Positions 2,464-47,804 of a stretch of 64,000 nucleotides of DNA are shown here, piece after piece; position 1 is the stretch's first letter, and the number at the start of each line of letters is the position of its first letter. The position numbers and the translations under genes were made by a program. The DNA comes from Ophelia neglecta (taxonomy: Eukaryota), in the NCBI GenBank assembly GCA_965285935.1, contig OZ260664.1, positions 88,350,001 through 88,414,000 on the forward strand. The letters are read 5' to 3'. The notes below the pieces were generated by a model. It had not been told where the DNA came from and made no database searches. It worked only from the letters and a program-made list of their open reading frames with translations.

Positions 2464-4724
2464 AGCCAGAGCTGGTCCACACAGTGCAATAGTCTGAGAG
2501 TCAGTCTGATAACAACTCAGGTGATTACCATACTGTGGTGTGGGGGAGTGTTCAGTTTAAAATGTCAAGGATTCTAGCCCACTAGCAGTCCCAAATATCT
2601 GACCTTACCCCAGTCAGAACCATGTTAACATTGGCAATCCTCTCAGGCAGTAATACACAAGTCATAAAACTGATTTTATATTAGCCAAGGCAGACATTCT
2701 AGCACACTGAGATTGTGAGAAATCAAGCAACTAGTTTGCTCTGCAGCACATTACCCTGGCGGGGAGATCAGGTCTATCCCCAGGCCTGATTAGATCAGCC
2801 AGTATTATACAATCACACTTAACCAGGGAACAATATGGAAACAGAAAAGTAGGGCTAGTGCAGTCAGTGACTTTACACTAGCACTAGCCCGATGCCCTTA
2901 GACTAGTAGTTTCATTTGGGCCAAATTGCAGCATTTCAATTTTAACAAGACCTTTTATGTATCAATGACCTATGGCTCCAAGCCAGGGAAGCTGTGAACC
3001 CGTTACGGCCACTGGCCACAACGCGTCACAATCATTCCCCCCAACGCTTAGTTACTAATCAATTAAAAATCAAATATGGCATGCATGTTTGTCTTTTTTG
3101 ATGAGTTTTTCCTGGCCAGTAAAGAAACCTGCCACACCGGCCGTGCTGACCGCAATGGCTCCATCACTGGTCCACTGCAGTGCAACCAGTGTGAGCGGTA
3201 ACTAAGGTGTTGTCAAGGTGCCTCATGGTCATTTGATGGTGATTTGCGTCACAGCTTTAGAGCCGTCCGCCCCATACCCAGCACATGTCAGCACCTGGCT
3301 CCTAAGATCAATCCTTACAGCCAAATTACATTGCAACTGGCATCAATCCTAACAAGATTTTATGGTGTCTATTTCCGACACACGCCTTCCGTAGATAGAT
3401 TTTTAATTACTTTCCAACTGGCACTAAAATTAGTTAATATGGACATGAAATTAATATCAGGTCAGCTCATGACTGCTGCTATGGATGAGCCGGGTCCCCT
3501 GGGGGAAGTGTGTGTGTGTGGGGGGGGGGGGGGACCGGGGACTTATCTTCAAAATGGGTACATATAATGTTACCTGTCATAATTAAAATAAAGACCCGGA
3601 CTCTTCATTGAGGCCCAAATTTAAGGGGTCAACACTCTTCATTGTAACTAATGGTGGCATCAAGACCCTATATTGAGATTAACAAAAAGGGTAAAAACTC
3701 TACATTGAAGCTAATAATGGGGGTTCATACTCTGGCCCACCCAAAAGATGGAGGAAAGGATGGTCAAAGTGCTACACTATCTTAATGGGGGTCAATAACA
3801 CATCAGGTATTATTCCCCAAAGTAGGGGTCAAAACTTTACATCATATTGTGAAAAAAAAGAGGGATCAATACCACAGCATATATTATGTACTACTTAAGG
3901 TATGGGGAGTGACCCCTCTCAGTGGGGAGGGAGGGGGGGGGGAGAGATATATCTTTTTAATACTTAGAAGAGAACCAAACCTGTCACTTCTTGATCACTT
4001 TTTGTGCATGTTCTAAAACCTGTAGCATATTGAAATAGTGACTAACAAGCAGTCCATACAACTACATGAATCACTGTATAAACCCCAAGTGAATCTCAGA
4101 AATGCCAATTTCTCCACATTTAAATATTTGGGTGGCCCTCATTCGACAGGTTATTGTGTTTTTTTCGCTGTCCTTGGTGAACTACAATAGAAATAAACAT
4201 CACCAGGAATGTTCATTACAGGAATTTTATTTCATCAGTATATTATCATTGGCTGTAAAGAGAATTGGAGCAGTCGGGCTTACGTCACCACCGCTGATTT
4301 GTGACTACTTCACTAGGTGAAAACACCACAGGCTCAGCACTAGTTACATGCTAAATTCGGCATTTTCAGCGCTCTATTGTCAGTTAACTATCTGATATAA
4401 AGAGGGAATGTTATGGGATTCTGATCCTATATGATAAAACGAACACGACAGATGAAAACCTTAATGATTTTGGTTGAGTTTAAAGCTCACAGGGCAATTC
4501 TTATTTGACTCTTTTAACATAGAAAATATAGCAACTTGACGGCAACTTCACCGAGCGCTGGACAACGGAGTGACGGCCACGCGTGTTTGTGATTGGCTGA
4601 GCACCATTCCGAGAATGATGCAGGGAGTCTGTCGGGCGGTGTTCAGTGTTACTCTGGAAATGACTAACTTGGTCTCAGGGAGTTTTCCATACTCTATTTG
4701 CTGGCTCAGAATATTAGCAGTATA

Positions 4725-4902: not shown

Positions 4903-5411
4903 TATAACTCTGGAAAGGACTCACTTGGTCTCAGGGAGTTTTTCCTGCTCTATTTTCTGGCCTAAGTATACTTGTAGTATACAATAACCATGGAGGGAGA
5001 AGCTTGCCAAGGTGCTATTATGTTGTTGTTATTTTGGTCTAGGCAGGTCAGGGCATTCCGAGTTACTATCGCTGGTATAAAGTAACATTACACAGTCTTC
5101 TTAACACCCCCACGGAGAAATGACTAGTCAACAACCTAGTCAACAACAAATAACACAGCTACACAATGTACGGGAGGCATTAATCACCACCTGATGAATA
5201 CCACATACAACTATAACATCACACACCAACTTAGAGCAAGTCTGGAACATATTCCAGCAATGTTTGGGTTCAACATTTCTTGATTATAACTAATCACATT
5301 AATATCAAATAAGGAGCTGTGAAATGTATGACCCTTTCAAAGGAATTGGTTTGTTAATAACTAACATTGTTGGCAGGTGATCCACTCAATACACTGCTCA
5401 GCACCATTTTA

Positions 5412-5585
5412 CATCCCTGCGATGTAGGGCCACCCCTAAATCCAAGGAAAAGTGGCCCTACATTGCAGGTGGCCCTTCATCAGAGATACTTTATCATGGA
5501 AAAGATAGGACATGGGAATTAAAAAACCGTCCTGCCATCGCAGGTGGCCTTTTTTTGGAGGGGCCCTACATCGCAGGGACCACTT
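5412..5585 (-). mobile_element. MITE family A copy 2 (inverted relative to copy 1)
   Basis: Reverse complement of the 4725-4902 interior; TA flanks; 4-bp deletion in the left TIR (CA----TCCCTGCGATGTAGGGCC). Confidence 0.85.
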
Positions 5586-6585
5586 TACTTGTTAAATACA
5601 CCAGTACACTAGGTATACCATAGTCATTGTTATAAGCACCCACATCTTAATAAATGCCCACCATCTTTACATTTTCACCTTTTTTGCAAGGTTTTTTTTT
5701 TGCATTCTTGGGCCACATAATTATCAAGGCGCCCAGCAGCCCAGCCATGATCTAAAAGCTAATAGGAGTTACATATCAAATAAAGGCCGCCTTGTTAATT
5801 TTATAATAAGGTAGGGCCATGGCTTATTAAGGATTTTTATAATTGAAGTCTTCATAAGAGAACTTTGTTATTCCAATACAAATGGAATTGCCAAGTTGGA
5901 CACAAAATCGCATTATCTGAAAAATGAATAACTCTTAGATCAAATAGGGTATGTCTGTGTCAACTTTGAAAGGGAAGGTCAAGGTCAAAATAAATGCTGA
6001 CATTTAACTGACAAACTAATTTTGACTTTAGCATTCTCTGTCATGTTGTTTTTCAAGGCAGATGTAGGGCAAAATTAATACCTATGGTGAAATGATAATA
6101 AAACCTACCTTAATACTTAGTCTATCTGACAGTTTTGGACTTAAAAGAGAAGTTAATTCTACCCACACATCATTACAAAGATCAGTACTACAAATCAATT
6201 AGAATTTTATGAAGACAACTGTGAGGTCTTTCCACAGGGGGTCAAAACTACTAATACGAAAGCCGATAGCCGAGATTTTAAACAGATCAGCTGCTATTCC
6301 AGGAACAATCTCCGACTGACACAGACAGCGACTAGACACTAAGGGTCTGGCTGCTTGGCACGAGAGGACGGGGTGGTATTAAACAGATTGGTCATTATTT
6401 ACAGACCCCAATGAAAGTCAAGTTGACCTGAGAATATCCAGTTTAAGGTTTTCTGTCGACAGACGGCAGATGATTGGAGGTAACCAATCACAGTCAGAGG
6501 AAATGAGTAGGAGACTTACTGAGTAGACTTACACCTGTCTGCACCATATAAGGCTGATGGCTCAAGTCCAGATGTACATCATGGG

Positions 6586-6860
6586 TATAGGGAGAGTAGG
6601 GGGAGGGGGGGTGGAAGGAGGGGGGAGGGGAGGGGGCGTGGGGGGAGGGTGGAAGGAGGGGGGAGGGGAGGGGGAGTGGGGGGAGGGGAAAGAATTGGGT
6701 AGCGGATTTGCTGTAGACATAGATAATATGTCAGCACGATGTATGTCTGAGGGATGAAAACCAGATACATACTATGGGGTGGGGGTGAGTTGGGAGGGAA
6801 TGGAGGGGGGGGGGGGAGGAGGGGGGCATACATAGGGAGAGAGGTTAGGAGAAGAGGGGC
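6586..6860 (+). repeat. G-rich low-complexity tracts (G-quadruplex-prone)
   Basis: Dense G3-G11 runs at 6586-6690 and 6775-6860. Confidence 0.75.
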
Positions 6861-7495
6861 GATATCAGTATGGGATGTGGTTAGCTGAAATAGTCAGGGA
6901 AGACTCACCGACCATACCCATAATGGCAAATAAACACCTGACAGCCTAGTCTGGGACAAGTCAAACCTGCTCACCCCTTCAGGAAACTGATAGGAAAACT
7001 ACATACTGCCAGATTATTACAAACAGGATGTGGTAACTTGATAATTAACCAAGACAGGTGTACTCAAGTTAGTGCAAAAGGAGTGGCCAAGCAGCTCACA
7101 AACTTCCGTTAACAACTAGCGGTAAGAGGAGCTGAACATAGTATGTTCTATGACATAAGAGCTTCTAGACTGACATGCTGTGTATGGCTGGAGCAGACTT
7201 GGCCTTGGTGGCAAGTCGACACATCTTCACATCTACTGTACTTGTCATTTAAACGCCTGGCAAGTCTATCAACTGATCACGGTAGCCTTCAGGACTTGGG
7301 AGTTCTCACATTAAAATGGAGGCCACAGCTTCTGATTTAATGTTTTACATATCTTCTTGTAATCTTCAGTATCAATCAGAATTCACTCTTTCCGGTATCT
7401 CCTTATTAACTTGTACAGCAGGGGGCATTTCTCATTTAGCTCACCACAGAATTTGACGGCCTTCACACAAAAAAACACACAAAGTGGTTTCCATT

Positions 7496-8736: not shown

Positions 8737-9851
8737 GCCAGTCTTACACTGACAATGTACTGAGGGTTTCCAGAGGCCTTCCAGATAAATACGACCAGGC
8801 ACCTGGTGACATTAATACCTGGTCCAGGTAACAACTAACCAGCTGCTGTCCTGAGGATAGATACCAGCCAATATCCGACACCCCGTTCTCCATTAATACA
8901 AACTAGGTTAAAAGCTGGTATGGGCCCAAAGTCGGATATCTCAAGTTCCTTAAACAGGCAGTGGTAACAATGACACTCACAACACATTCTGTGACACACA
9001 CAGGTACCCCGTGAGGACTGAAGGTCAGCTTTTATCCAATAGCTGGGTTGGACTTTCCTATTCCAAGTCAGGAATGACCTTTGTTTATAATAATAAAGAA
9101 CAATTTCTGAGATAACAGATGGCACCAGATATCAAGGGGTATTATTCAATGAAAAGTGATTGACAAAGGTTACCACAATAGGATGACAATGCTTCCGTTG
9201 CTGTCTGACATCCACACGGATTTTAACCTGAAGTGATGCAGAGAACCAGAGCTCAATACATGTAGCGTATTTAGCGGTACATTCATTACACCTATTTACT
9301 ATACTACTTTACATGTATAATACCTATTTATTGTCTCACTAACTTTTAACAACCTCTAATGATTTTCAGTCAGAACAAAGATCTCTAATCCATACACCTA
9401 GAAAGTTTGACCCCAATGAAGCTCCATAACATATTATTGGTACCATAACTACATGTTATTATAAATCTAATGAATTCTGATAGTTATATATTAACTATAG
9501 CCAACTAAAAGACACTTCATGGCCCACATGGTGCTATGTGTCGTTAAACCACAAAAAAACACAATTCCATTCAGCAGGACAGCTTCTACAGGGGTCCTTT
9601 ACAGTTACCCAAAAATTGAAATAGACAACTTTCTTCCCAGGGGTGACATAATATAATAAGACTACCAAGGCACAAAGGGCAGGATCTCAGTGATGAACCT
9701 GTTGCTTCCAGTTACAATAAAAACAATTGTATTGTATTTATCAACAATATTATTGAAAGAAGTAATACTCCAAGTCCTAGATCCCATGGTCTATAAGAGG
9801 GGAGCTTATTTTCACTGACTGTAAAAGAAATAAAGAAATGATAAGTTAAGT

Positions 9852-10933
9852 AACCCTAGTAACTAGATCATGGCTTGTCCCAGTGTCCTTGGACATCCAT
9901 AGTAACTAGATCATGGAGTTGTCCCAGTGTCCTTGGACAACCCTAGTAACTAGATCATGGCTTGTCCCAGTGTCCTTGGACAACCATAGTGACTAGATCA
10001 TGGAGTTGTCCCAGTGCCCTTGGACAACCATAGTGACTAGATCATGGAGTTGTCCCAGTGTCCTTGGACAACCCAGTGACTAGATCATGGAGTTGTCCCA
10101 GTGTCCTTGGACAACCCTAGTAACTAGATCATGGCTTGTCCCAGTGCCCTTGGACAACCATAGTGACTAGATCATGGAGTTGTCCCAGTGTCCTTGGACA
10201 ACCATAGTGACTAGATCATGGCTTGTCCCAGTGTCCTTTGACACCCATAGTGACTGGATCATGGCTTGTCCCAGTGTCCTTGGACACCCATGGTGACTAG
10301 ATCATGGCTTGTCCCAGTGTCATTGGACACCCATGGTGACTAGATCATGGCTTGTCTCAGTGTCCTTGGACACCCATGGTGACTAGATCATGGCTTGTCC
10401 CAGTGCCCTTGGACACCCATGGTGACTAGTTCATGGCTTGTCCCAGTGTCCTTGGACACCCACAGTGACTAGATCATGGTGTTGTCCAAGTGCCCTTGGA
10501 CACCCATAGTGACTAGATCATGGCTTGTCCCAGTGTCCTTGGACACCCATGGTGACTACCGGTAGATCATGGCTTGTCCCAGTGCCCTTGGACACCCATG
10601 GTGACTAGATCATGGCTTGTCCCAGTGTCCTTGGACGACCATAGTGACTAGATCACGGCTTGTCCAGTGTCCTTGGACACCCATAGTGACTAGATCATGG
10701 CTTGTCCCAGTGCCCTTGGACACCCATGGTGACTAGATCATGGCTTGTCCCAGTGTCCTTGGACAACCCAGTGACTAGATCATGGCTTGTCCCAGTGCCC
10801 TTGGACACCCATGGTGACTAGATCATGGCTTGTCCCAGTGCCCTTGGACACCCATAGTGACTAGAACATGGCTTGTCCCAGTGTCCTTGGAGTACCATAG
10901 TGACTAGATCATGGTGTTGCCCGGTGCCCTTGG
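9852..10933. repeat. 43/44-bp minisatellite (CCCATAGTGACTAGATCATGGCTTGTCCCAGTGTCCTTGGACA), ~25 units
   Basis: Direct reading. Confidence 0.96.
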
Positions 10934-15008: not shown

Positions 15009-16996
15009 TAGAGCTTGTCAGTAGAATTTGGTTCTTTTTGCTTGCTGTAAATGACAGATGTACGATTTTGGATAAATATGGGAGGATTGCCTTTCAATTG
15101 AAGACTAAGGGTGGGTGGGGGTGCCCACCCTCAACCTAGGAGGTCCTATGGTGGGTGCACCCTACTGCACCCTCCAGTCACTCACTGGCGGAACAGGTGT
15201 TGAGAAAATAGGGTCCATAGCCCTGCATCCCCTCTCTAAGTCAGCCAGTGGCAATGACTTCAGGTTTACCTAAGTCAAACAGCCATGTGTTCTGTGGAAA
15301 GCTGTGAAGAGCTGTGATGAACAGTTGTAAATCATCCCTGATTTACAGTTCACAGTGCAAGTCTAACCTGTTCAAATTGGTTAAGTGCAATGTTATTATG
15401 GTGGTAACAATCCATAAATGTCATGACTTATTACTCACATTAAAAGTCACCATCTGAGTCACTGCTCGTGCACTGTTCACCTCAATCTACTCAGCAAAGG
15501 ATGGAATGCTCAGAATATAAAGACAGAGAAATGTACCATGATCAATCCATAATGAAATGTGAAAATCATTACTCCTACGCATGACTGACTGATATTCAAT
15601 TGATTCCATGTGGATATTTTGTGAAAATGATTTGACCTGTCACTTCGTGTGACCCCACTGGTCATTGATGCTTGACACTTCACAAAGGTTTATTTAACAC
15701 TCCAGCTAAGGATTCTGGGAAATATGAATAAAGCCTGCTGCATTGTGAAATGAACATGGTCAATGTGCACCTACCAAGTCAGAATCAGCCATTTACGGTA
15801 GTCATGGTTGCTCATAAACTATCAAGTCGGCCATTTACTTGGGCGGCTATAAGAGCTGGAATATTTCTTCTAATTGTAGAAAACCTGTCAAATTGAGGCC
15901 ACTTTTATGATAGACAAGGAAAGTAAACAAGTGCCATAATCAATTTTATCGGCCGCTCCGATCCAGGTGACGTCACGATTTGTAAAATTTTCGGGCATAG
16001 TAAAGGGAGTCGGTTCCCTCCTCCCAAAAATACATGAAGATAAGTCATAACACTTGGACTCCAAACAAGAAATTTAGTAGTATAGAAGGCACTTATCTAC
16101 CATGACAAATTTAGTTGAAACTTTGATCGTTTCCAATACAGTTCTCTTGTTTGTATGCCAGGAACAAAACACCTTATCAACGAAATGGAAACATCCACGT
16201 CTTGTATCAACAATGATGTGGTTTTAACACTAAAAGAGGAAGCATACATGTATCACATATCTAAATATTCTGCCCCCAGGCTTGTCAGGACATCTTTGTT
16301 GTTTTCTAGTGCTTCCTGAGTGCCTAAGAGTGTTTACTTTCATTGAGTATTTGCCTGCTCACAGAAAGGGCCAATTGGAAGGCTCATATCCACTTCATTG
16401 TAACTCCAACACAATGTTCAACTATTGACTGATAACACTGGGGCTTGGAAGATAAATTTAAAGTAAGCAGACATGTGAGGAGCATTGTGTCGGCCAGAGA
16501 CTGGTTGTATCTCTGGCTGTAGCCTTAGGCATCGCACTGTTAAAACTGGGATTCAGCACATTTTGTTTGTCAATGAAGAGAAAGAAGAGGAAATTAAAAT
16601 CAAATCATGTCCCCCGTGAGTTCATTTAGACACGTGAGTTCATTTAGACACGGGCACATTAGCCAGGGGCAATACCCTTGCCTTTACTTTTTATAAACTT
16701 TTCAAGCATTCATGAACAGCAATACTCAATCACAGAGAGCACAAAGAGTTTTTCTTAATGAGAATTCCCTTCTGCCACATTTCTAACTTTGATTGTGTGC
16801 CCGCTTCTGTCAGGAATTCTTATTTAGATTGCCCGTCTTCTGTTTAAAACAATGACACACATTTTAAACAGTGTCTTTGAACAAATGAATGGCAACAGCA
16901 GAGCAAAGGCCTATGATGGCAATTCCCTTATATACATAACTGACTAAGGGCTAGAGGGACACATGTCCAAGAGCAACCATAACATGCTATGGAGGA

Positions 16997-32819: not shown

Positions 32820-35800
32820 TAACAGCAGGCAAGTCTACACCAGAGCAGAACACACAGCTAGAAGGCAAGGCCATAGAGTGACAGTAGGCAAGGCAAGCCC
32901 AGAGCAGAACACACAACTAGAAGGCAAGGCCATAGAGCAACAGCAGGCAAGGCAAGCCAAGAGCAGATCACACCACTAGAAGGCAAGGCCATAGAGCGAC
33001 AGTAGGCAACTGGGCCAAGAGCAGAACACACCACTAGAAGGCAAGGCCATAGAGCAACAGCAGGCAAGGCGAGCCAAGAGCAGATCACACCACTAGAAGG
33101 CAAGGCCATAGGGAACAGCAGGCAAGGCCAGCCCAGAGCAGAACACACCACTAGAAGGAAAGGCCATAGAGCAACAGCAGGCAAGGCCAGCCAAGAGCAG
33201 AACACACAACTAGAAGGAAAGGCCATAGAGCAACAGCAGGCAAGGCAAGCCCAGAGCAGAACACACAACTAGAAGGAAAGGCTATAGAGCAACAGCAGGC
33301 AAGGTGAGCCAAGAGCAGAACACACCACTAGAAGGCAAGGCCATAGAGCAACAGCAGGCAAGGCGAGCCAAGAGCAGATCACACCACTAGAAGGCAAGGC
33401 CATAGGGAACAGCAGGCAAGGCGAGCCAAGAGCAGATCACACCACTAGAAGGCAAGGCCATAGAGCAACAGCAGGCAAGGCAAGCCCAGAGCAAAACACA
33501 CAACTAGAAGGAAAGGCCATAGAGCAACAGCAGGCAAGGCGAGCCAAGAGCAGAACACACAACTAGAAGGAAAGGCCATAGAGCAACAGCAGGCAAGGCC
33601 AGCCCAGAGCAGAACACACCACTAGAAGGCAAGGCCATAGAGCAACAGCAGGCAAGGTGAGCCAAGAGCAGAACACACCACTAGAAGGCAAGGCCATAGA
33701 GCAACAGCAGGCAAGGCGAGCCAAGAGCAGATCACACCACTAGAAGGCAAGGCCATAGAGCAACAGCAGGCAAGGTGAGCCAAGAGCAGAACACACAACT
33801 AGAAGGCAAGGCCATAGAGCAACAGCAGGCAAGGTGAGCCAAGAGCAGAACACACCACTAGAAGGCAAGGCCATAGAGCAACAGCAGGCAAGGTGAGCCA
33901 AGAGCAGAACACACAACTAGAAGGCAAGGCCATAGAGCAACAGCAGGCAAGTCTAGCCCAGAGCAGAACACACCACTAGAAGGCAAGGCCATAGAGCAAC
34001 AGCAGGCAAGGCGAGCCAAGAGCAGATCACACCACTAGAAGGCAAGGCCATAGAGCAACAGCAGGCAAGTCTAGCCCAGAGCAGAACACACCACTAGAAG
34101 GCAAAAGGCCATAGAGCGACAGCAGGCAAGGCGATCCCAGAGCAGAACACACCACTAGAAGGCAAGGCCATAGAGCAACAGCAGGCAAGTCTAGCCCAGA
34201 GCAGATCACACAACTAGAAGGCAAGGCCATAGAGCAACAGCAGGCAAGTCTAGCCCAGAGCAGATCACACCACTAGAAGGCAAGGCCATAGAGCAACAGC
34301 AGGCAAGGCGAGCCAAGAGCAGAACACACCACTAGAAGGCAAGGCCATAGAGCAACAGCAGGCAAGGCCAGCCCAGAGCAGAACACACCACTAGAAGGCA
34401 AGGCCATAGAGCAACAGCAGGCAAGGCGAGCCAAGAGCAGATCACACAACTAGAAGGCAAGGCCATAGAGCAACAGCAGGCAAGGTGAGCCAAGAGCAGA
34501 ACACACCACTAGAAGGCAAGGCCATAGAGCAACAGCAGGCAAGGTGAGCCAAGAGCAGAACACACAGCTAGAAGGCAAGGCCATAGAGCAACAGCAGGCA
34601 AGGCGAGCCAAGAGCAGATCACACCACTAGCAGGCAAGGCCATAGAGCAACAGCAGGCAAGGTGAGCCAAGAGCAGAACACACCACTAGAAGGCAAGGCC
34701 ATAGAGCAACAGCAGGCAAGGCGAGCCAAGAGCAGATCACACCACTAGAAGGCAAGGCCATAGAGCAACAGCAGGCAAGGTGAGCCAAGAGCAGAACACA
34801 CCACTAGAAGGCAAGGCCATAGAGCAACAGCAGGCAAGGTGAGCCAAGAGCAGATCACACCACTAGAAGGCAAGGCCATAGAGCAACAGCAGGCAAGGTG
34901 AGCCAAGAGCAGAACACACAACTAGAAGGCAAGGCCATAGAGCAACAGCAGGCAAGGTGAGCCAAGAGCAGAACACACCACTAGAAGGCAAGGCCATAGA
35001 GCAACAGCAGGCAAGGTGAGCCAAGAGCAGAACACACAACTAGAAGGCAAGGCCATAGAGCAACAGCAGGCAAGTCTAGCCCAGAGCAGAACACACCACT
35101 AGAAGGCAAGGCCATAGAGCAACAGCAGGCAAGGCGAGCCAAGAGCAGATCACACCACTAGAAGGCAAGGCCATAGAGCAACAGCAGGCAAGTCTAGCCC
35201 AGAGCAGAACACACCACTAGAAGGCAAAAGGCCATAGAGCGACAGCAGGCAAGGCGATCCCAGAGCAGAACACACCACTAGAAGGCAAGGCCATAGAGCA
35301 ACAGCAGGCAAGTCTAGCCCAGAGCAGATCACACCACTAGAAGGCAAGGCCATAGAGCAACAGCAGGCAAGTCTAGCCCAGAGCAGATCACACCACTAGA
35401 AGGCAAGGCCATAGAGCAACAGCAGGCAAGGCGAGCCAAGAGCAGAACACACCACTAGAAGGCAAGGCCATAGAGCAACAGCAGGCAAGGCCAGCCCAGA
35501 GCAGAACACACCACTAGAAGGCAAGGCCATAGAGCAACAGCAGGCAAGTCTAGCCCAGAGCAGATCACACCACTAGAAGGCAAGGCCATAGAGCAACAGC
35601 AGGCAAGGCGAGCCAAGAGCAGATCACACCACTAGCAGGCAAGGCCATAGAGCAACAGCAGGCAAGGTGAGCCAAGAGCAGAACACACCACTAGAAGGCA
35701 AGGCCATAGAGCAACAGCAGGCAAGGCGAGCCAAGAGCAGATCACACCACTAGAAGGCAAGGCCATAGAGCAACAGCAGGCAAGGCGAGCCAAGAGCAGA

Positions 35801-36575
35801 TCACACCACTAGCAGGCAAGGCCATAGAGCAACAGCAGGCAAGGTGAGCCAAGAGCAGAACACACCACTAGAAGGCAAGGCCATAGAGCAACAGCAGGCA
35901 AGGCGAGCCAAGAGCAGATCACACCACTAGAAGGCAAGGCCATAGAGCAACAGCAGGCAAGGTGAGCCAAGAGCAGAACACACCACTAGAAGGCAAGGCC
36001 ATAGAGCAACAGCAGGCAAGGCCAGCCCAGAGCAGAACACACCACTAGAAAGCAAGGCCATAGAGCAACAGCAGGCAAGGTGAGCCAAGAGCAGAACACA
36101 CAGCTAGAAGGCAAGGCCATAGAGTGACAGCAGGCAAGGTGAGCCAAGAGCAGAACACACCACTAGAAGGCAAGGCCATAGAGCAACAGCAGGCAAGTCT
36201 AGCCCAGAGCAGAACACACCACTAGAAGGCAAGCCCATAGAGCAACAGCAGGCAAGGTGAGCCAAGAGCAGAACACACAGCTAGAAGGCAAGGCCATAGA
36301 GTGACAGCAGGCAAGGTGAGCCAAGAGCAGAACACACCACTAGAAGGCAAGGCCATAGAGCAACAGCAGGCAAGTCTAGCCCAGAGCAGATCACACCACT
36401 AGAAGGCAAGGCCATAGAGCAACAGCAGGCAAGTCTAGCCCAGAGCAGAACACACCACTAGAAGGCAAGGCCATAGAGCTACAGCAGGCAAGTCTAGCCC
36501 AGAGCAGAACACACCACTAGAAGGCAAAAGGCCATAGAGCGACAGCAGGCAAGGCGATCCCAGAGCAGAACATAC
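32820..36575. repeat. 59-bp satellite (GAAGGCAAGGCCATAGAGCAACAGCAGGCAAGGCGAGCCAAGAGCAGAACACACCACTA), ~63 units
   Basis: Direct reading; largest array in the window. Confidence 0.98.
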
Positions 36576-40096: not shown

Positions 40097-40508
40097 TTGC
40101 TGCATTGAAATCCTGTCTTTAGTCTCCGACATCAATTTGGCCGTGTTCCAGTTTTTTTTTTGGGGGGGGGGGTGTTTAATCAGCAGATTGTTTACTGACA
40201 CACAGCGGCTTTCTCTCGGCTTCACCGCCATGCTCGATTGAGCATGGCCACTTCCAGGCGACGCTAACCAATGACAAATGGCTGCCGCAGCTAATCTACA
40301 ATCTTGGCGATCAATCTTTGGAGGAAATCGCCGTTATTGAACGCAGATTACCTTACCTTCATGTATGGGCTACACCGTATGCCTAAAGGGGTCGTCTCGG
40401 TTCTCCAAAGAATTGCACTGATACAATGTTTATTGACTAAATCAGTTGTCAGGTTGATAATGGAGGACCACATTCTCGTAGTGATATGAACAAAGCTTTT
40501 CTGTTCTA

Positions 40509-40727
40509 CTGTAATTCATCTAATTTTCAGACACCAACAATTATTTTAAATTCCAACCATATGAATAATTAGAGGCAAAACCTAAATCATTACTATTTTG
40601 AGTACTTGTTTCATAGTTTCCATAATAGGGTACCATATATGTGTCCTTATAATTAGAGGTAAAAATATTATTGGAAAACTGGAGTGTATAAATAAATAGA
40701 GTGTATGAATAATTAGAAATATTACAG
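40509..40727. mobile_element. ~220-bp TA-flanked MITE (CTGTAA-type ends)
   Basis: TA|CTGTAATTCATCTAATT...AATTAGAAATATTACAG|TA; repeated TAATTAGA motifs inside. Confidence 0.65.
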
Positions 40728-41047
40728 TAATCAAGCTGATCAAAAGGCAGCAGAGATTAGATTGCTATACATCTAAGTAAGGTTAAACTATTGATAAAAG
40801 GATAAAATTCCTCATACATGATATTTTACTCCTCAAGTTGTTGGAAGGTTTGTTTCAAACAACATATTGGGTATTAATATACATAATTATATATTCCTGC
40901 CTTATATATATAACTGAACAAAGTTCTGGTCAGTACAAACCGTCCATGTATAGACAAATTACATTAAAGTTGATTAAAATGATAACTTGATCATAAATCT
41001 TTGGAGGGAAACCAATAAGAGTAGGTAAGACATAAATCAATGCCATT

Positions 41048-41143
41048 TCTTACCCGTCGTTGTCTACAAGTTAAATGGATACTCACCTGAAACAGAAAGA
41101 AAAATACATTAATAGGAGAGACAACAGACAAAGACAATAGATG
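41048..41143 (-). other. Candidate recursive splice site (AG|GTGAGT) with 33-nt RS-exon (41054-41086)
   Basis: Minus strand reads CATCTATTGTCTTTGTCTGTTGTCTCTCCTATTAATGTATTTTTCTTTCTGTTTCAG|GTGAGTATCCATTTAACTTGTAGACAACGACGG|GTAAGA: ~55-nt AG-free pyrimidine-rich zone, branch-like TTAAT, CAG acceptor, immediate GTGAGT donor, and a second donor 33 nt downstream. Confidence 0.62.
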
Positions 41144-41145
41144 TA

Positions 41146-41298
41146 CAGTGGAACCCCTCATGAGAGTCCTCCAAACATGAGGTCTTACAAGAGGGGTGCT
41201 ATCTCATCAGTGGTTGAAATACATGGCAGGTATAGCAAATAGTTTAGCAAGAGTGGTTTCAGCCATTGTTGGGTGGTCTTTCATCAAGGGTTCCATTG
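41146..41298. mobile_element. 153-bp pogo-type MITE
   Basis: TA|CAGTGGAACCC...GGGTTCCATTG|TA, with GGTGGTCT-like internal motifs. Confidence 0.7.
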
Positions 41299-43733
41299 TA
41301 CACAGCTATAGTCATTGACAGGTTAATGTATATGATCTAACTGAAATTATTAATATTAAATAGTCTGTGATAGACAACCTACTTGAAGTGACTATTAACC
41401 TTGTCACTAGATCAATAATACATTATCCTGGCACTCGCGGTTAACAATAGCTCGAGACATATGACACGCTTGGTTAGAGCTGGGGTGGCCTATGACACGG
41501 TTGATTAGACCTGGTGTGGCCTTGGAATAAAATGGGGCACTCGTTTATTTAAAGTTCAATATCCTTTAGTCAGAAGCATTCGACAGATCTATAAATATTG
41601 CAATTCTGATATCTGGGCACTGTTTACCTATAGCACCGTTTTTCATGGCTTTCAACACTTTAAACAAAGCATCGTAGGGATAACCTCTACAAAAAAAACC
41701 TACTTATATTTACCTGAAAACTATCAGTTGTGGCCTATACAAGTATGTTGGTGATATTTTTTTTGGTTACACAAACTCCTAAAAACACTGGTAGTGGTGT
41801 GTTTACCGTTTATCAGACACTGATAACTCTATATAATTATTTTATCAAATACTGGTAGGTATTGAAGCTAACATCAAACTGCTAGACGGAGTTTAATAAA
41901 AACCTGTACAGTCCAACGTCAAGGTCAACTGAAGTTTAAAAATAAATAGGGGACATAGGCCAAATCGCAAAAAAAGATGATTTGGTCTAGAAAAAAAAAT
42001 TCAAAATCCCTTGTTACTTTTTATTGCATATTAACTTTTATCAAATACTGGTAATTGCATATTTACTTCTATCAAACGCTGGTTACTGCCCAATTACTTT
42101 TATCAAGTGGCTATTATTTGACAATAATTCAAATCTCTCTTTTTACGTGACCTCACTTTGTACTGGTTTCTAAATGCTGGAAACTTATAAACCAGACATT
42201 ACCCAGGGATTATGTGAGTGTGAGAAGAAGCAATAATTAATTGATGAATGCTCACTAACTTCTTTACGAGTGCGAGTTTGCCTTGAAAATTTCGATGAAA
42301 AGTCAATCAACTACAACATAATGATTTGACCTTCAGGTATTTAATAATACCGTGCTTCAAAGGTGAGCCATTATAGTACAGATATCGAACAAATAAGACC
42401 AAACATAAACCATCGATAGACAACCCAGGTGCAGAATGCCATAAAATATCTTTAATATGCTTTTAATGCCAAGTCTGCAGATTATTTATTATATAATAAA
42501 AAGTAATGTCCACCACATTCTAGGTGAGAATGGTTGTAACTTCTGGGGCAGGTGGGGAATTAGATAATTCTGACTATAACAAGCCCAGTGAATCACAATT
42601 AATGTCAGCCAGAAGATGGAAAGTGACATGAAAGTGGACAATATCTACTACAAGGTGACAGGTCACTAATGGGGGAGGCAGATGCAGGGGAGAGTGGCCT
42701 CAGGGGGAGAAAAGGTAGATGGGAGGGTGGGGAGATTGCGGGGGAGGGACGGGGGGGGGGGATTGAAAGGGCTAGAAGTAGAAAGTGTGGGAAAGGCCAA
42801 AGTGAGACTACTGGAGAGTGAGGTCATGCAGGGGTCAGTGGAACACAGAGAGGCCAATGGACACTAGTATGGAGGACTATGGTGATATTAAACAGGTGTA
42901 GGAAGCAGTGAGAGGGGCAATTACAAAGTGGCACACCAGGAAGAAACCACCCATGGACTACAAAACACTCAGAAGTAACACAGAGAGCAATCTCCCATGG
43001 ACATCAAAAACTACTCAGATAGCACTGTGAACAACCTTCCACAGGCCACAGGAACTCTATTGATCAATCAATCCACACAATCAATTGATCAATCAATTCG
43101 CACAATCAATTGATCAATCAATCTTTATTCATTCAAAAAAGCAACTGAGTATTTATGGCCCATGCTTCTGGTCTTTCACAGTAAAAACAAAGTTATGAGC
43201 CAATAATGTTATCAGCATTTGTGAAACACAGGAACCTGCTCCTTATTGTGGCACATAACATATACTCTAACTCTGCAGTCTAGCCCACACCGGAAGGCTT
43301 CAATGAAGATGTGCTGCGGCTGAGGGCATCAAAACCCAAGTTGTAGACCTGAGATGCTTGAACTCAGACACTGTGATTGTCATCAGAGGACACTCCGCGT
43401 CCTTTTCTCATTAAAAAAATGTTAAATGACACCGCTCACTAAATACCTGCTGAATTAAGTAACTGCACCCCGGAAGCAGGGGAATTAAAGCTCACAAACA
43501 CTTGGAGTGGCGCTGGACAGCTTTTTTGCAGACAGACACACTGTGAACAAGGCAGTCAATTAAGGGGCTGGCCTTGGCAGATGGTAGAATGAAGATCAGG
43601 TGAAAAGAAACAGAAAATATACAGAAGAATACAACAAATTTACAAAAAATATGGACAAAATACAGAAAAAATATAAGGTATGACTTTTAAAGATACTTTG
43701 AAGATGGCCCTTGGGGCTGTAATGTAGTAGGAA

Positions 43734-44044
43734 GGTTAGGGCGTCCACCTCACAAGTGGGAGATCGGGGTTCGAAGCTCGATCGCGTCAAACCTAAGACG
43801 TAAAAATAGGTACTGATAGCTCCCCTGCCAGGCGCCCGGTATCTCGGGGGTAGTATCAGGACTGGCCAACCCGGTGTCAGTATAATGTGACTGAGTGGGG
43901 TTCCCTGTCTGGTGTCTACGGCAGGTACTCCAGTGAGGCAGCACTCTAAAGAGGGCATTGGGCCCACTGTCACAAGTAGGCACAGTGGCGATATGACCGA
44001 TAAGTGTTGAAAGCCACGTAAAAACCCCAAACAACAACAACAAC
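43734..44044 (+). mobile_element. tRNA-derived SINE (A box truncated)
   Basis: B-box-like GGTTCGAAGCT, core GGTGTCAGTATAATGTGACTGAGTGG...CAGTGAGGCAGCACTCTAAA, 3' end TGTTGAAAGCCACGTAAAAACCCCAAA(CAA)n. Confidence 0.9.
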
Positions 44045-44150
44045 CATATTCATAGTGATTTATCATACATTAAAACTATACTACTTAATATACGAAGAGA
44101 TCAGCAACAAATAATTGAAACATGTTAAACAGGACCTGATCCAGCAGCCG

Positions 44151-44371
44151 GGCCCAGTGTCTATAAGCTGTCTTGAGTTAAGGGATGAGTTTAGCCTATA
44201 ACCAATTAGCTGGGACAGTATAAATCGGTTTTTCAGGATTAAGTTTAGACCAAATTTAGAAGGTGTAAGTTCAAACCAGCTTCCTGAAACCCCAATTAGC
44301 AAGTTAAGACCATTGAAGCACTTTTATTCTGACTTTAATCTGAGTTAGGGCTGCTTCCTGAAACATGTACC
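44151..44371. mobile_element. Dispersed repeat family C copy (duplicated at 46970-47190)
   Basis: Inverted homology to 38484-38703. Confidence 0.55.
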
Positions 44372-46552
44372 TAGTTAACTAGACTGAAAAAATCCCAGGC
44401 CATCTTTCCCTCCAAGCGGTAGTGCTGTACACGGTGGTCCCCTCTCATACACGGACATGACCCACTAGCCCGTTAAGTCCTAGTCCAAACCATTAGTCTT
44501 CATTAGGTATTTTCCGAGACCTTTAATTTCCTGTCAGTCACATGTATCAGTCAGGCCATGGCCCCATCAACCTGACCATCCACACCCCATACCATCAAAA
44601 TAACCGCCTTAAATCTGAAGCACAAACTGCATACATGAATATAACCAAGGCTTGCCACTCTCCAGGTCTGGGCAGGAGGCTTCTCTTGATATGTCCTGGG
44701 GTAAGCTCTAAATATACAGTCATTTTCATATGGCAGGGAAACTACAATTTTTCTCTTCATTTAAAAAAAAATTATTTTTTTGCAAGTCTCTTTTATATGT
44801 CTGCTACAACCCCATATTTAGAAATTCATTATGCCTACAAATCACTCAATCAAATTTATCTAATTAAGTGTGGCTAAAAGCATGGCCCAGCAATCAAGTC
44901 ATTACTGCCCAATTACTTTTATCAAGTGGCTATTATTTGACAATAATTCAAATCTCTCTTTTTACGTGACCTCACTTTGTACTGGTTTCTAAATGCTGGA
45001 AACTTATAAACCAGACATTACCCAGGGATTATGTGAGTGTGAGAAGAAGCAATAATTAATTGATGAATGCTCACTAACTTCTTTACGAGTGCGAGTTTGC
45101 CTTGAAAATTTCGATGAAAAGTCAATCAACTACAACATAATGATTTGACCTTCAGGTATTTAATAATACCGTGCTTCAAAGGTGAGCCATTATAGTACAG
45201 ATATCGAACAAATAAGACCAAACATAAACCATCGATAGACAACCCAGGTGCAGAATGCCATAAAATATCTTTAATATGCTTTTAATGCCAAGTCTGCAGA
45301 TTATTTATTATATAATAAAAAGTAATGTCCACCACATTCTAGGTGAGAATGGTTGTAACTTCTGGGGCAGGTGGGGAATTAGATAATTCTGACTATAACA
45401 AGCCCAGTGAATCACAATTAATGTCAGCCAGAAGATGGAAAGTGACATGAAAGTGGACAATATCTACTACAAGGTGACAGGTCACTAATGGGGGAGGCAG
45501 ATGCAGGGGAGAGTGGCCTCAGGGGGAGAAAAGGTAGATGGGAGGGTGGGGAGATTGCGGGGGAGGGACGGGGGGGGGGGATTGAAAGGGCTAGAAGTAG
45601 AAAGTGTGGGAAAGGCCAAAGTGAGACTACTGGAGAGTGAGGTCATGCAGGGGTCAGTGGAACACAGAGAGGCCAATGGACACTAGTATGGAGGACTATG
45701 GTGATATTAAACAGGTGTAGGAAGCAGTGAGAGGGGCAATTACAAAGTGGCACACCAGGAAGAAACCACCCATGGACTACAAAACACTCAGAAGTAACAC
45801 AGAGAGCAATCTCCCATGGACATCAAAAACTACTCAGATAGCACTGTGAACAACCTTCCACAGGCCACAGGAACTCTATTGATCAATCAATCCACACAAT
45901 CAATTGATCAATCAATTCGCACAATCAATTGATCAATCAATCTTTATTCATTCAAAAAAGCAACTGAGTATTTATGGCCCATGCTTCTGGTCTTTCACAG
46001 TAAAAACAAAGTTATGAGCCAATAATGTTATCAGCATTTGTGAAACACAGGAACCTGCTCCTTATTGTGGCACATAACATATACTCTAACTCTGCAGTCT
46101 AGCCCACACCGGAAGGCTTCAATGAAGATGTGCTGCGGCTGAGGGCATCAAAACCCAAGTTGTAGACCTGAGATGCTTGAACTCAGACACTGTGATTGTC
46201 ATCAGAGGACACTCCGCGTCCTTTTCTCATTAAAAAAATGTTAAATGACACCGCTCACTAAATACCTGCTGAATTAAGTAACTGCACCCCGGAAGCAGGG
46301 GAATTAAAGCTCACAAACACTTGGAGTGGCGCTGGACAGCTTTTTTGCAGACAGACACACTGTGAACAAGGCAGTCAATTAAGGGGCTGGCCTTGGCAGA
46401 TGGTAGAATGAAGATCAGGTGAAAAGAAACAGAAAATATACAGAAGAATACAACAAATTTACAAAAAATATGGACAAAATACAGAAAAAATATAAGGTAT
46501 GACTTTTAAAGATACTTTGAAGATGGCCCTTGGGGCTGTAATGTAGTAGGAA

Positions 46553-46863
46553 GGTTAGGGCGTCCACCTCACAAGTGGGAGATCGGGGTTCGAAGCTCGA
46601 TCGCGTCAAACCTAAGACGTAAAAATAGGTACTGATAGCTCCCCTGCCAGGCGCCCGGTATCTCGGGGGTAGTATCAGGACTGGCCAACCCGGTGTCAGT
46701 ATAATGTGACTGAGTGGGGTTCCCTGTCTGGTGTCTACGGCAGGTACTCCAGTGAGGCAGCACTCTAAAGAGGGCATTGGGCCCACTGTCACAAGTAGGC
46801 ACAGTGGCGATATGACCGATAAGTGTTGAAAGCCACGTAAAAACCCCAAACAACAACAACAAC
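46553..46863 (+). mobile_element. tRNA-derived SINE (copy created by the tandem duplication)
   Basis: Matches 43734-44044 at offset 2819. Confidence 0.9.
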
Positions 46864-47804
46864 CATATTCATAGTGATTTATCATACATTAAAACTATAC
46901 TACTTAATATACGAAGAGATCAGCAACAAATAATTGAAACATGTTAAACAGGACCTGATCCAGCAGCCGGGCCCAGTGTCTATAAGCTGTCTTGAGTTAA
47001 GGGATGAGTTTAGCCTATAACCAATTAGCTGGGACAGTATAAATCGGTTTTTCAGGATTAAGTTTAGACCAAATTTAGAAGGTGTAAGTTCAAACCAGCT
47101 TCCTGAAACCCCAATTAGCAAGTTAAGACCATTGAAGCACTTTTATTCTGACTTTAATCTGAGTTAGGGCTGCTTCCTGAAACATGTACCTAGTTAACTA
47201 GACTGAAAAAATCCCAGGCCATCTTTCCCTCCAAGCGGTAGTGCTGTACACGGTGGTCCCCTCTCATACACGGACATGACCCACTAGCCCGTTAAGTCCT
47301 AGTCCAAACCATTAGTCTTCATTAGGTATTTTCCGAGACCTTTAATTTCCTGTCAGTCACATGTATCAGTCAGGCCATGGCCCCATCAACCTGACCATCC
47401 ACACCCCATACCATCAAAATAACCGCCTTAAATCTGAAGCACAAACTGCATACATGAATATAACCAAGGCTTGCCACTCTCCAGGTCTGGGCAGGAGGCT
47501 TCTCTTGATATGTCCTGGGGTAAGCTCTAAATATACAGTCATTTTCATATGGCAGGGAAACTACAATTTTTCTCTTCATTTAAAAAAAAATTATTTTTTT
47601 GCAAGTCTCTTTTATATGTCTGCTACAACCCCATATTTAGAAATTCATTATGCCTACAAATCACTCAATCAAATTTATCTAATTAAGTGTGGCTAAAAGC
47701 ATGGCCCAGCAATCAAGTCATTAATCTGAGTATGGTTCAATAGACAAATATATCTACAGCAGTGCTAATCCTCCATTCCAGGTTACAGTTTATACTCTCT
47801 GGAT

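Follow-up and report, generated by a model that had tools for sequence, protein, structure and literature searches.

A candidate recursive splice site in a 158.6-kb THOC2 intron of Ophelia neglecta

Introduction

Could a very long intron in a lophotrochozoan be removed in steps, through a site where an acceptor runs directly into a donor? The question is raised by a short motif on the minus strand of a 64,000-nucleotide stretch of Ophelia neglecta DNA (here called the window; contig OZ260664.1, 88,350,001 to 88,414,000), which an earlier note had proposed as a candidate ratchet point followed by a cryptic RS-exon. Recursive splicing is an established process in flies and vertebrates; for annelids and molluscs, the literature searched gave no paper on the subject. 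Ratchet points with cryptic RS-exons are known from the Drosophila genes Ubx, kuz and Bx (Hatton 1998, Duff 2015, Joseph 2018; summarised in PMC8605326). They lie in long introns and consist of a fused acceptor and donor followed by a cryptic RS-exon of about 50 nt, and their donor beats the donor of the RS-exon, so that the RS-exon is recognised and then skipped as the regenerated donor wins (PMC8605326).

The fused acceptor/donor motif

The motif was found as the earlier note had described it, on the minus strand, with a tract leading into TTTCAG|GTGAGT and a second donor 33 nt further on. Its parts are as follows, in window positions.

41089-41143, minus strand: pyrimidine-rich tract, which with the AG makes up the acceptor half (3' splice site) of the candidate ratchet point
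41112-41108, minus strand: branch-like TTAAT inside the tract
41087-41088, minus strand: AG of the candidate recursive 3' splice site, at the tract end TTTCAG
41081-41086, minus strand: GTGAGT, candidate ratchet-point donor, fused directly to the AG and predicted to be regenerated after the first step
41054-41086, minus strand: 33-nt candidate cryptic RS-exon, open and frame-preserving in a phase-0 intron
41048-41053, minus strand: GTAAGA, the downstream donor (CGG|GTAAGA), which would define the RS-exon

The candidate acceptor has an AG-free zone of 70 nt, with 80% pyrimidines in a 20-nt span and 78% in a 40-nt span; the second A of TTAAT lies 22 nt upstream of the G in the candidate AG. The bases that follow GTGAGT are AT, and the donor reads GTGAGTAT. 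The juxtaposed 3' and 5' splice sites expected of a ratchet point, a tract followed by YAG|GTRAGT, are thus present as TTTCAG|GTGAGT, and the short cryptic RS-exon with its downstream donor is present as the 33 nt closed by CGG|GTAAGA. The reading frames of the 33-nt segment also agree with the earlier description, as frame 1 is open (VSIHLTCRQRR), frame 2 has a TGA and frame 3 a TAG.

The host intron

The surroundings of the motif were identified by homology. Full-length THOC2 proteins map exon by exon on the minus strand on both sides of the window (tblastn onto the window and the flank loci), and the same search gave no THOC2 match within the window. The exons were matched one by one to the abalone protein and not as a joined spliced model. 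In abalone THOC2, the alignment of the upstream flanking exon stops at residue 283 and that of the next exon begins at 284, which places the window within a single intron. This intron has a length of 158,565 nt and is in phase 0, and the window lies wholly inside it. The upstream exon ends at contig position 88458346 (position 4346 of flank piece L030) and the next exon starts at 88299780 (position 9780 of flank piece L025). The intron and the THOC2 domains around it are given below in contig coordinates.

88299781-88458345, minus strand: THOC2 giant intron, from exon mapping; window coordinates -50219 to 108345
88458337-88459819, minus strand: THOC2_N positions 141-297, from the Pfam family genome search
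88294386-88294568, minus strand: THOC2_N positions 375-434, from the Pfam family genome search
88278622-88279948, minus strand: Thoc2 domain, from the Pfam family genome search
88272-88274 kb, minus strand: exons of the Tho2 domain, from a Pfam scan of ORFs

The earlier proposal that the window is part of one very long minus-strand intron is therefore correct, with minus-strand THOC2 exons on either side of it that encode neighbouring residues. Its statement that 64 kb hold no coding exon stands for THOC2, and no coding ORF was found in the window; it does not extend to the surroundings, where plus-strand GPCR genes lie a short way beyond both ends of the window within the same intron. Genome-wide, Pfam matches to THOC2_N, Thoc2 and Tho2 were obtained at this locus only and on the minus strand only, which makes THOC2 a single-copy gene. 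The other mapped introns of the gene measure 0.4-5 kb. The candidate site is situated 67,259 nt from the donor of the giant intron and 91,306 nt from its acceptor, at 42% of the intron length, and it has the sense orientation inside a long intron that a ratchet point should have.

Two other contexts were considered. An intergenic location was favoured at first, because the window showed no coding ORF and the genes found closest to it were GPCRs on the plus strand, and it was dropped once minus-strand THOC2 exons turned up on both sides. A minus-strand ASB gene (ankyrin/SOCS-box) 99 kb to the left was also tried as the host and rejected, since its coding region is compact, the first coding exon being about 400 bp upstream of the last. 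Among named proteins, the ASB protein is best matched by one from Capitella.

Comparison with authentic splice sites

To judge the strength of the candidate we used the splice sites of THOC2 and of the neighbouring ASB gene. The ten authentic acceptors that were scored have 60-75% pyrimidines over 20 nt and 48-68% over 40 nt, and the candidate tract exceeds all of them. The authentic donors in the two genes are mostly GTAAGT or GTAAGA. The giant intron itself opens with CAT|GTAAGT, after an exon that ends in ...LIDLEAIYVH, and closes with tttcag|CTG TGT CCC..., where the next exon starts with LCPSD.... Joining CAT to GTGAGTAT in a first step would give CAT|GTGAGT, which agrees with the consensus at 8 of 9 positions; the downstream donor CGG|GTAAGA agrees at 7 of 9. 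Donor strength is here a plain count of consensus positions and not a calibrated splice-site score. By this count, the regenerated CAT|GTGAGT would equal the natural CAT|GTAAGT and outrank the downstream donor.

Frequency of the motif

Chance occurrence was estimated on 528 kb of local sequence, made up of both strands of the window and of twenty 10-kb flank pieces. An acceptor context as strong as that of the candidate was found at 42 of 17,749 YAG sites (0.24%). The same sequence holds 220 GTRAGT and 11 YAG|GTRAGT, and the candidate is the only one of the 11 with a tract. Among minus-strand AG|GTRAG sites, no other has a pyrimidine tract, either in the window or in the 108.6 kb of intron that were read. 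Assuming independence, about 0.004 fused sites of such quality are expected per 64-kb window on both strands, and about 0.005-0.016 on the sense strand of the host intron when the second donor is not counted; the probability of a GGTRAG at +20 to +90 is about 0.025. For the 762-Mb genome the expectation is about 50-150 fused sites. The rarity of the site is overstated by these numbers, because the thresholds were fixed after the site had been viewed. The site was selected as the best of 128 kb, among many scanned windows.

A search of the genome with the pattern Y8-N-YAG|GTRAGT gave 183 matches, as compared to 124 for a reversed control, and about one third of the listed forward matches are copies of a few repeats. 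The number of control matches implies that more than 100 comparable motifs occur in the genome by chance. Over the genome as a whole, such motifs show a slight excess of forward over reversed matches; it is no clear surplus and lends no usable support in either direction. The genome gives no clear sign of selecting for fused motifs.

Age, variation and origin of the site

In the red abalone (assembly GCA_023055435.1, identified via PMC9709998) the orthologous intron has the same position and phase and measures about 0.7 kb (positions 15850-16575 of the abalone piece, L038). The intron of O. neglecta is about 200 times larger. It follows that the giant size is specific to the lineage and that any ratchet point in the intron would be young. 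For the conservation of the acceptor|donor core, the red abalone is the one orthologous locus that was compared; two further THOC2 proteins, when looked up, led to no genomic record. A ratchet point that arose de novo after a roughly 200-fold growth of the intron, from less than 1 kb to 158.6 kb through the capture of GPCR genes, minisatellites and mobile elements, is a conceivable history of the site, and we consider it somewhat unlikely.

The contigs of one individual span the site, and they show no difference in 40982-41166 as compared to seven in the adjacent 140 nt, which is weak evidence for the site and too slight a contrast to claim constraint. The three sequencing runs that a search gave, from one sample, are DNA contigs, with an even genomic depth and no RNA-type joints; no RNA run turned up.

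A transposable-element origin of the signal was considered. The site is situated between two interspersed repeats.

41144-41300, minus strand: MITE-like interspersed repeat of about 160 bp with terminal inverted repeats, adjoining the tract and outside the signal
40505-40735, minus strand: second interspersed repeat, bounding the single-copy segment with the site

The MITE-like repeat has at least 620 candidate copies with 82-88% identity, and the aligned copies all end at the position equivalent to 41144, where the tract begins. The 396 nt from 40745 to 41140, which hold the site, have no other copy in the genome. Since the segment with the site is single-copy and the MITE ends at the tract, the signal is not carried by a repeat, and this origin was rejected.

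A recursive-splicing model

In its sequence, the candidate site has all the features of a ratchet point of the Drosophila type and of the cryptic RS-exon that goes with it, the donors being ranked by consensus count. We tentatively propose that it is a recursive splice site used in the processing of THOC2 transcripts, a reading that we hold to be a real possibility and stop just short of calling probable. During transcription of the intron, U2AF and U2 would bind the tract and the AG, and U1 would bind the downstream GTAAGA, by which the 33-nt segment would be defined as an exon. The upstream THOC2 exon would then be joined to position 41086, so that the first 67.3 kb of the intron are removed and the junction recreates the donor CAT|GTGAGT. 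The regenerated donor would in turn be spliced to the true acceptor 91.3 kb further on; the 33 nt would be lost with the rest of the intron and the mRNA would carry no trace of the event.

The size and frame of the putative RS-exon deserve attention. Because the intron is in phase 0, the 33 nt would be read in their open frame, and as their number is divisible by three the frame would be kept, which means that the segment is not a poison exon; neither the premature stop nor the frameshift that a poison RS-exon causes on inclusion is predicted here. The earlier suggestion that the segment should show up after NMD inhibition would therefore not work. A length of 33 nt is short for exon definition, and this counts against the recursive reading.

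The resemblance to the Drosophila ratchet points lies in the long pyrimidine tract and the YAG fused to GTRAGT, in a short cryptic exon ending at a downstream donor that is, by consensus count, the weaker one, and in a location deep in a very long intron, in sense orientation and with no predicted trace in the mRNA. Unlike those of Drosophila, the candidate is found in a lophotrochozoan and in a housekeeping gene, not in a long neuronal or developmental gene; its RS-exon would have 33 nt instead of about 50 and be in frame instead of out of frame, its intron is young in evolutionary terms, and it is known here from sequence alone. With the vertebrate RS-exons (Sibley 2015; Blazquez 2018, PMC6224609) it would share that exon definition starts the step, that the 5' end of the exon recreates a donor and that the two donors compete. 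Vertebrate cryptic RS-exons are, however, usually poison exons when included, whereas the THOC2 candidate would add 11 residues in frame. In that respect it is more like the m1/m2 microexons of Ubx (51 nt), which also preserve the frame, start with a donor consensus and belong to an intron of more than 70 kb, but m1/m2 are ultraconserved and demonstrably included, and the 33-nt segment has no counterpart in THOC2 of other species.

If the site is used as proposed, the phylogenetic range of recursive splicing would be widened, and the case would bear on the question of whether ratchet points are old conserved elements or may appear fast upon the expansion of an intron. A de novo origin as outlined above would make it the first of its kind in a lophotrochozoan and show that ratchet points can evolve fast when an intron expands, instead of being ancient and conserved. 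If it is unused, this would mean that even a super-consensus fused site lying in sense orientation within a giant intron can be passed over, which matters for the prediction of recursive sites from motifs. THOC2 is an essential, broadly needed mRNA-export gene, and its mRNA must be spliced over 158.6 kb. The locus is moreover a clean case for testing, with one outstanding candidate, known flanking exons and an intermediate that can be predicted precisely.

Alternative explanations

It is somewhat unlikely, though to be taken seriously, that the motif is a product of chance in young, repeat-rich intron DNA, and that the intron is removed in one step or via scattered stochastic sites while the site itself is ignored or barely used. 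The genome search is in keeping with this, as the reversed control came to 124 matches against 183 and many of the forward matches were repeat copies. So is the recent expansion of the intron, seen in the comparison with the 0.7 kb of the abalone and in a window full of minisatellites and mobile elements, which would have left little time for selection; and the site was picked after the fact as the best. Work on mouse brain and on lungfish reports few high-usage recursive sites even in very long introns (PMC8797253; 10.1101/2024.12.11.627982). Against chance speaks the low expected number on the sense strand, which falls about 40 times further when the second donor is required. The motif moreover predicted its orientation and its host intron, which were then independently confirmed, and the spliceosome would hardly overlook a signal that surpasses the authentic acceptors nearby and lies on a sense strand that is transcribed. 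That the segment is an expressed RS-exon or an alternative microexon is clearly improbable; the 33 nt would then sometimes be kept, by use of the downstream donor, and add the 11 residues VSIHLTCRQRR between ...AIYVH and LCPSD.... The phase of the intron, the open frame and the multiple of three all fit with such an exon, its downstream GTAAGA is a donor type of the authentic exons at this locus, and frame-preserving RS-exons of this type are on record (PMC8605326). However, a segment that is both open and divisible by three has a chance probability of about 0.2, the THOC2 proteins of other species are continuous over the junction without an insertion, and the donor of the ratchet point is closer to the consensus than the downstream one, which would favour skipping.

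The context itself could have been misread, either because an assembly or scaffolding insertion separates the two halves of THOC2 or because the signal belongs to another, nested minus-strand transcript, and we regard this as very improbable. It is true that the flanks were read as alternate 10-kb blocks, so that 108.6 kb of the 158,565-nt intron were covered, that the giant intron stands apart from the much shorter mapped introns of the gene and that it contains whole GPCR genes. Nevertheless, the two halves of THOC2 follow each other in order on a single 110-Mb contig and share one strand, there is no N in the 264 kb read, and the short-read contigs match the assembly over the 6 kb compared. 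As THOC2 is single-copy, its two halves must be spliced together, and the lack of a minus-strand coding ORF in the window argues against a nested transcript. The recursive use of the site stays our preferred, tentative reading.

Duplicated splice sites, nested genes and repeats

The THOC2 locus shows duplicated exon ends with their donors, and we considered whether the site may be a copy of the natural splice sites of the intron. When compared by eye, its likeness to the natural donor and acceptor amounted to pyrimidine richness only, and the idea was set aside. Elsewhere in the gene such duplications were evident. At their start, at least five THOC2 introns carry tandem arrays in which the last part of the exon before them is repeated with its donor, in 4 to 19 copies of 32-53 nt units. 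The arrays are situated as follows.

Positions 1860-2213, 2599-2901, 5279-5532, 6319-6944 and 9082-9821 of the flank piece at contig positions 88270001-88280000 (L024): exon-end/donor arrays

At the far end of the giant intron, the true acceptor and the first bases of the exon are duplicated about 105 nt upstream (positions 9886-9900 as compared to 9781-9795 of L025; contig 88299781-88299900), and this copy makes a decoy 3' splice site. A tRNA-derived SINE-like sequence was recognised by eye about 90 nt into the intron, at positions 4200-4260 of L030 (contig 88458200-88458260). A tRNA scan of the window found none.

On both sides of the window, the minus-strand THOC2 intron harbours aminergic-like GPCR genes, or pieces of such genes, on the plus strand.

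88418360-88418563, plus strand: first mapped coding exon of a GPCR, 4.4 kb to the right of the window
88442855-88443946, plus strand: GPCR main exon, to the right of the window
88320233-88327400 and 88343220-88343549, plus strand: GPCR-like pieces, to the left of the window

Some of the left-hand pieces carry stop codons. The closest match of the nested GPCR is the orphan GPCR 55 of Platynereis (60%), followed by proteins of Capitella and of other annelids and nemerteans. Taken with the Capitella match of the ASB protein, this points to a lophotrochozoan host, and to an annelid with more probability than to a mollusc.

The window is rich in minisatellites (94 TRF rows), and its long ORFs are all translations of tandem repeats. 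A tandem duplication of 2,819 bp occupies 42083-44901 and 44902-47720, with 100% identity over the 300 nt compared, and each copy has one ORF of 156 amino acids without a Pfam match. An element at about 43777-44044, with its duplicate at about 46596-46863, reached a summed contig depth of 4e5 to 1e6 in the DNA runs, as compared to a baseline of 10-30, and is an extremely abundant short interspersed repeat. A 59-bp satellite with 63.5 copies fills 32821-36572; many of its copies contain AAG|GTGAGC, which accounts for most of the plus-strand donor-like matches in the window.
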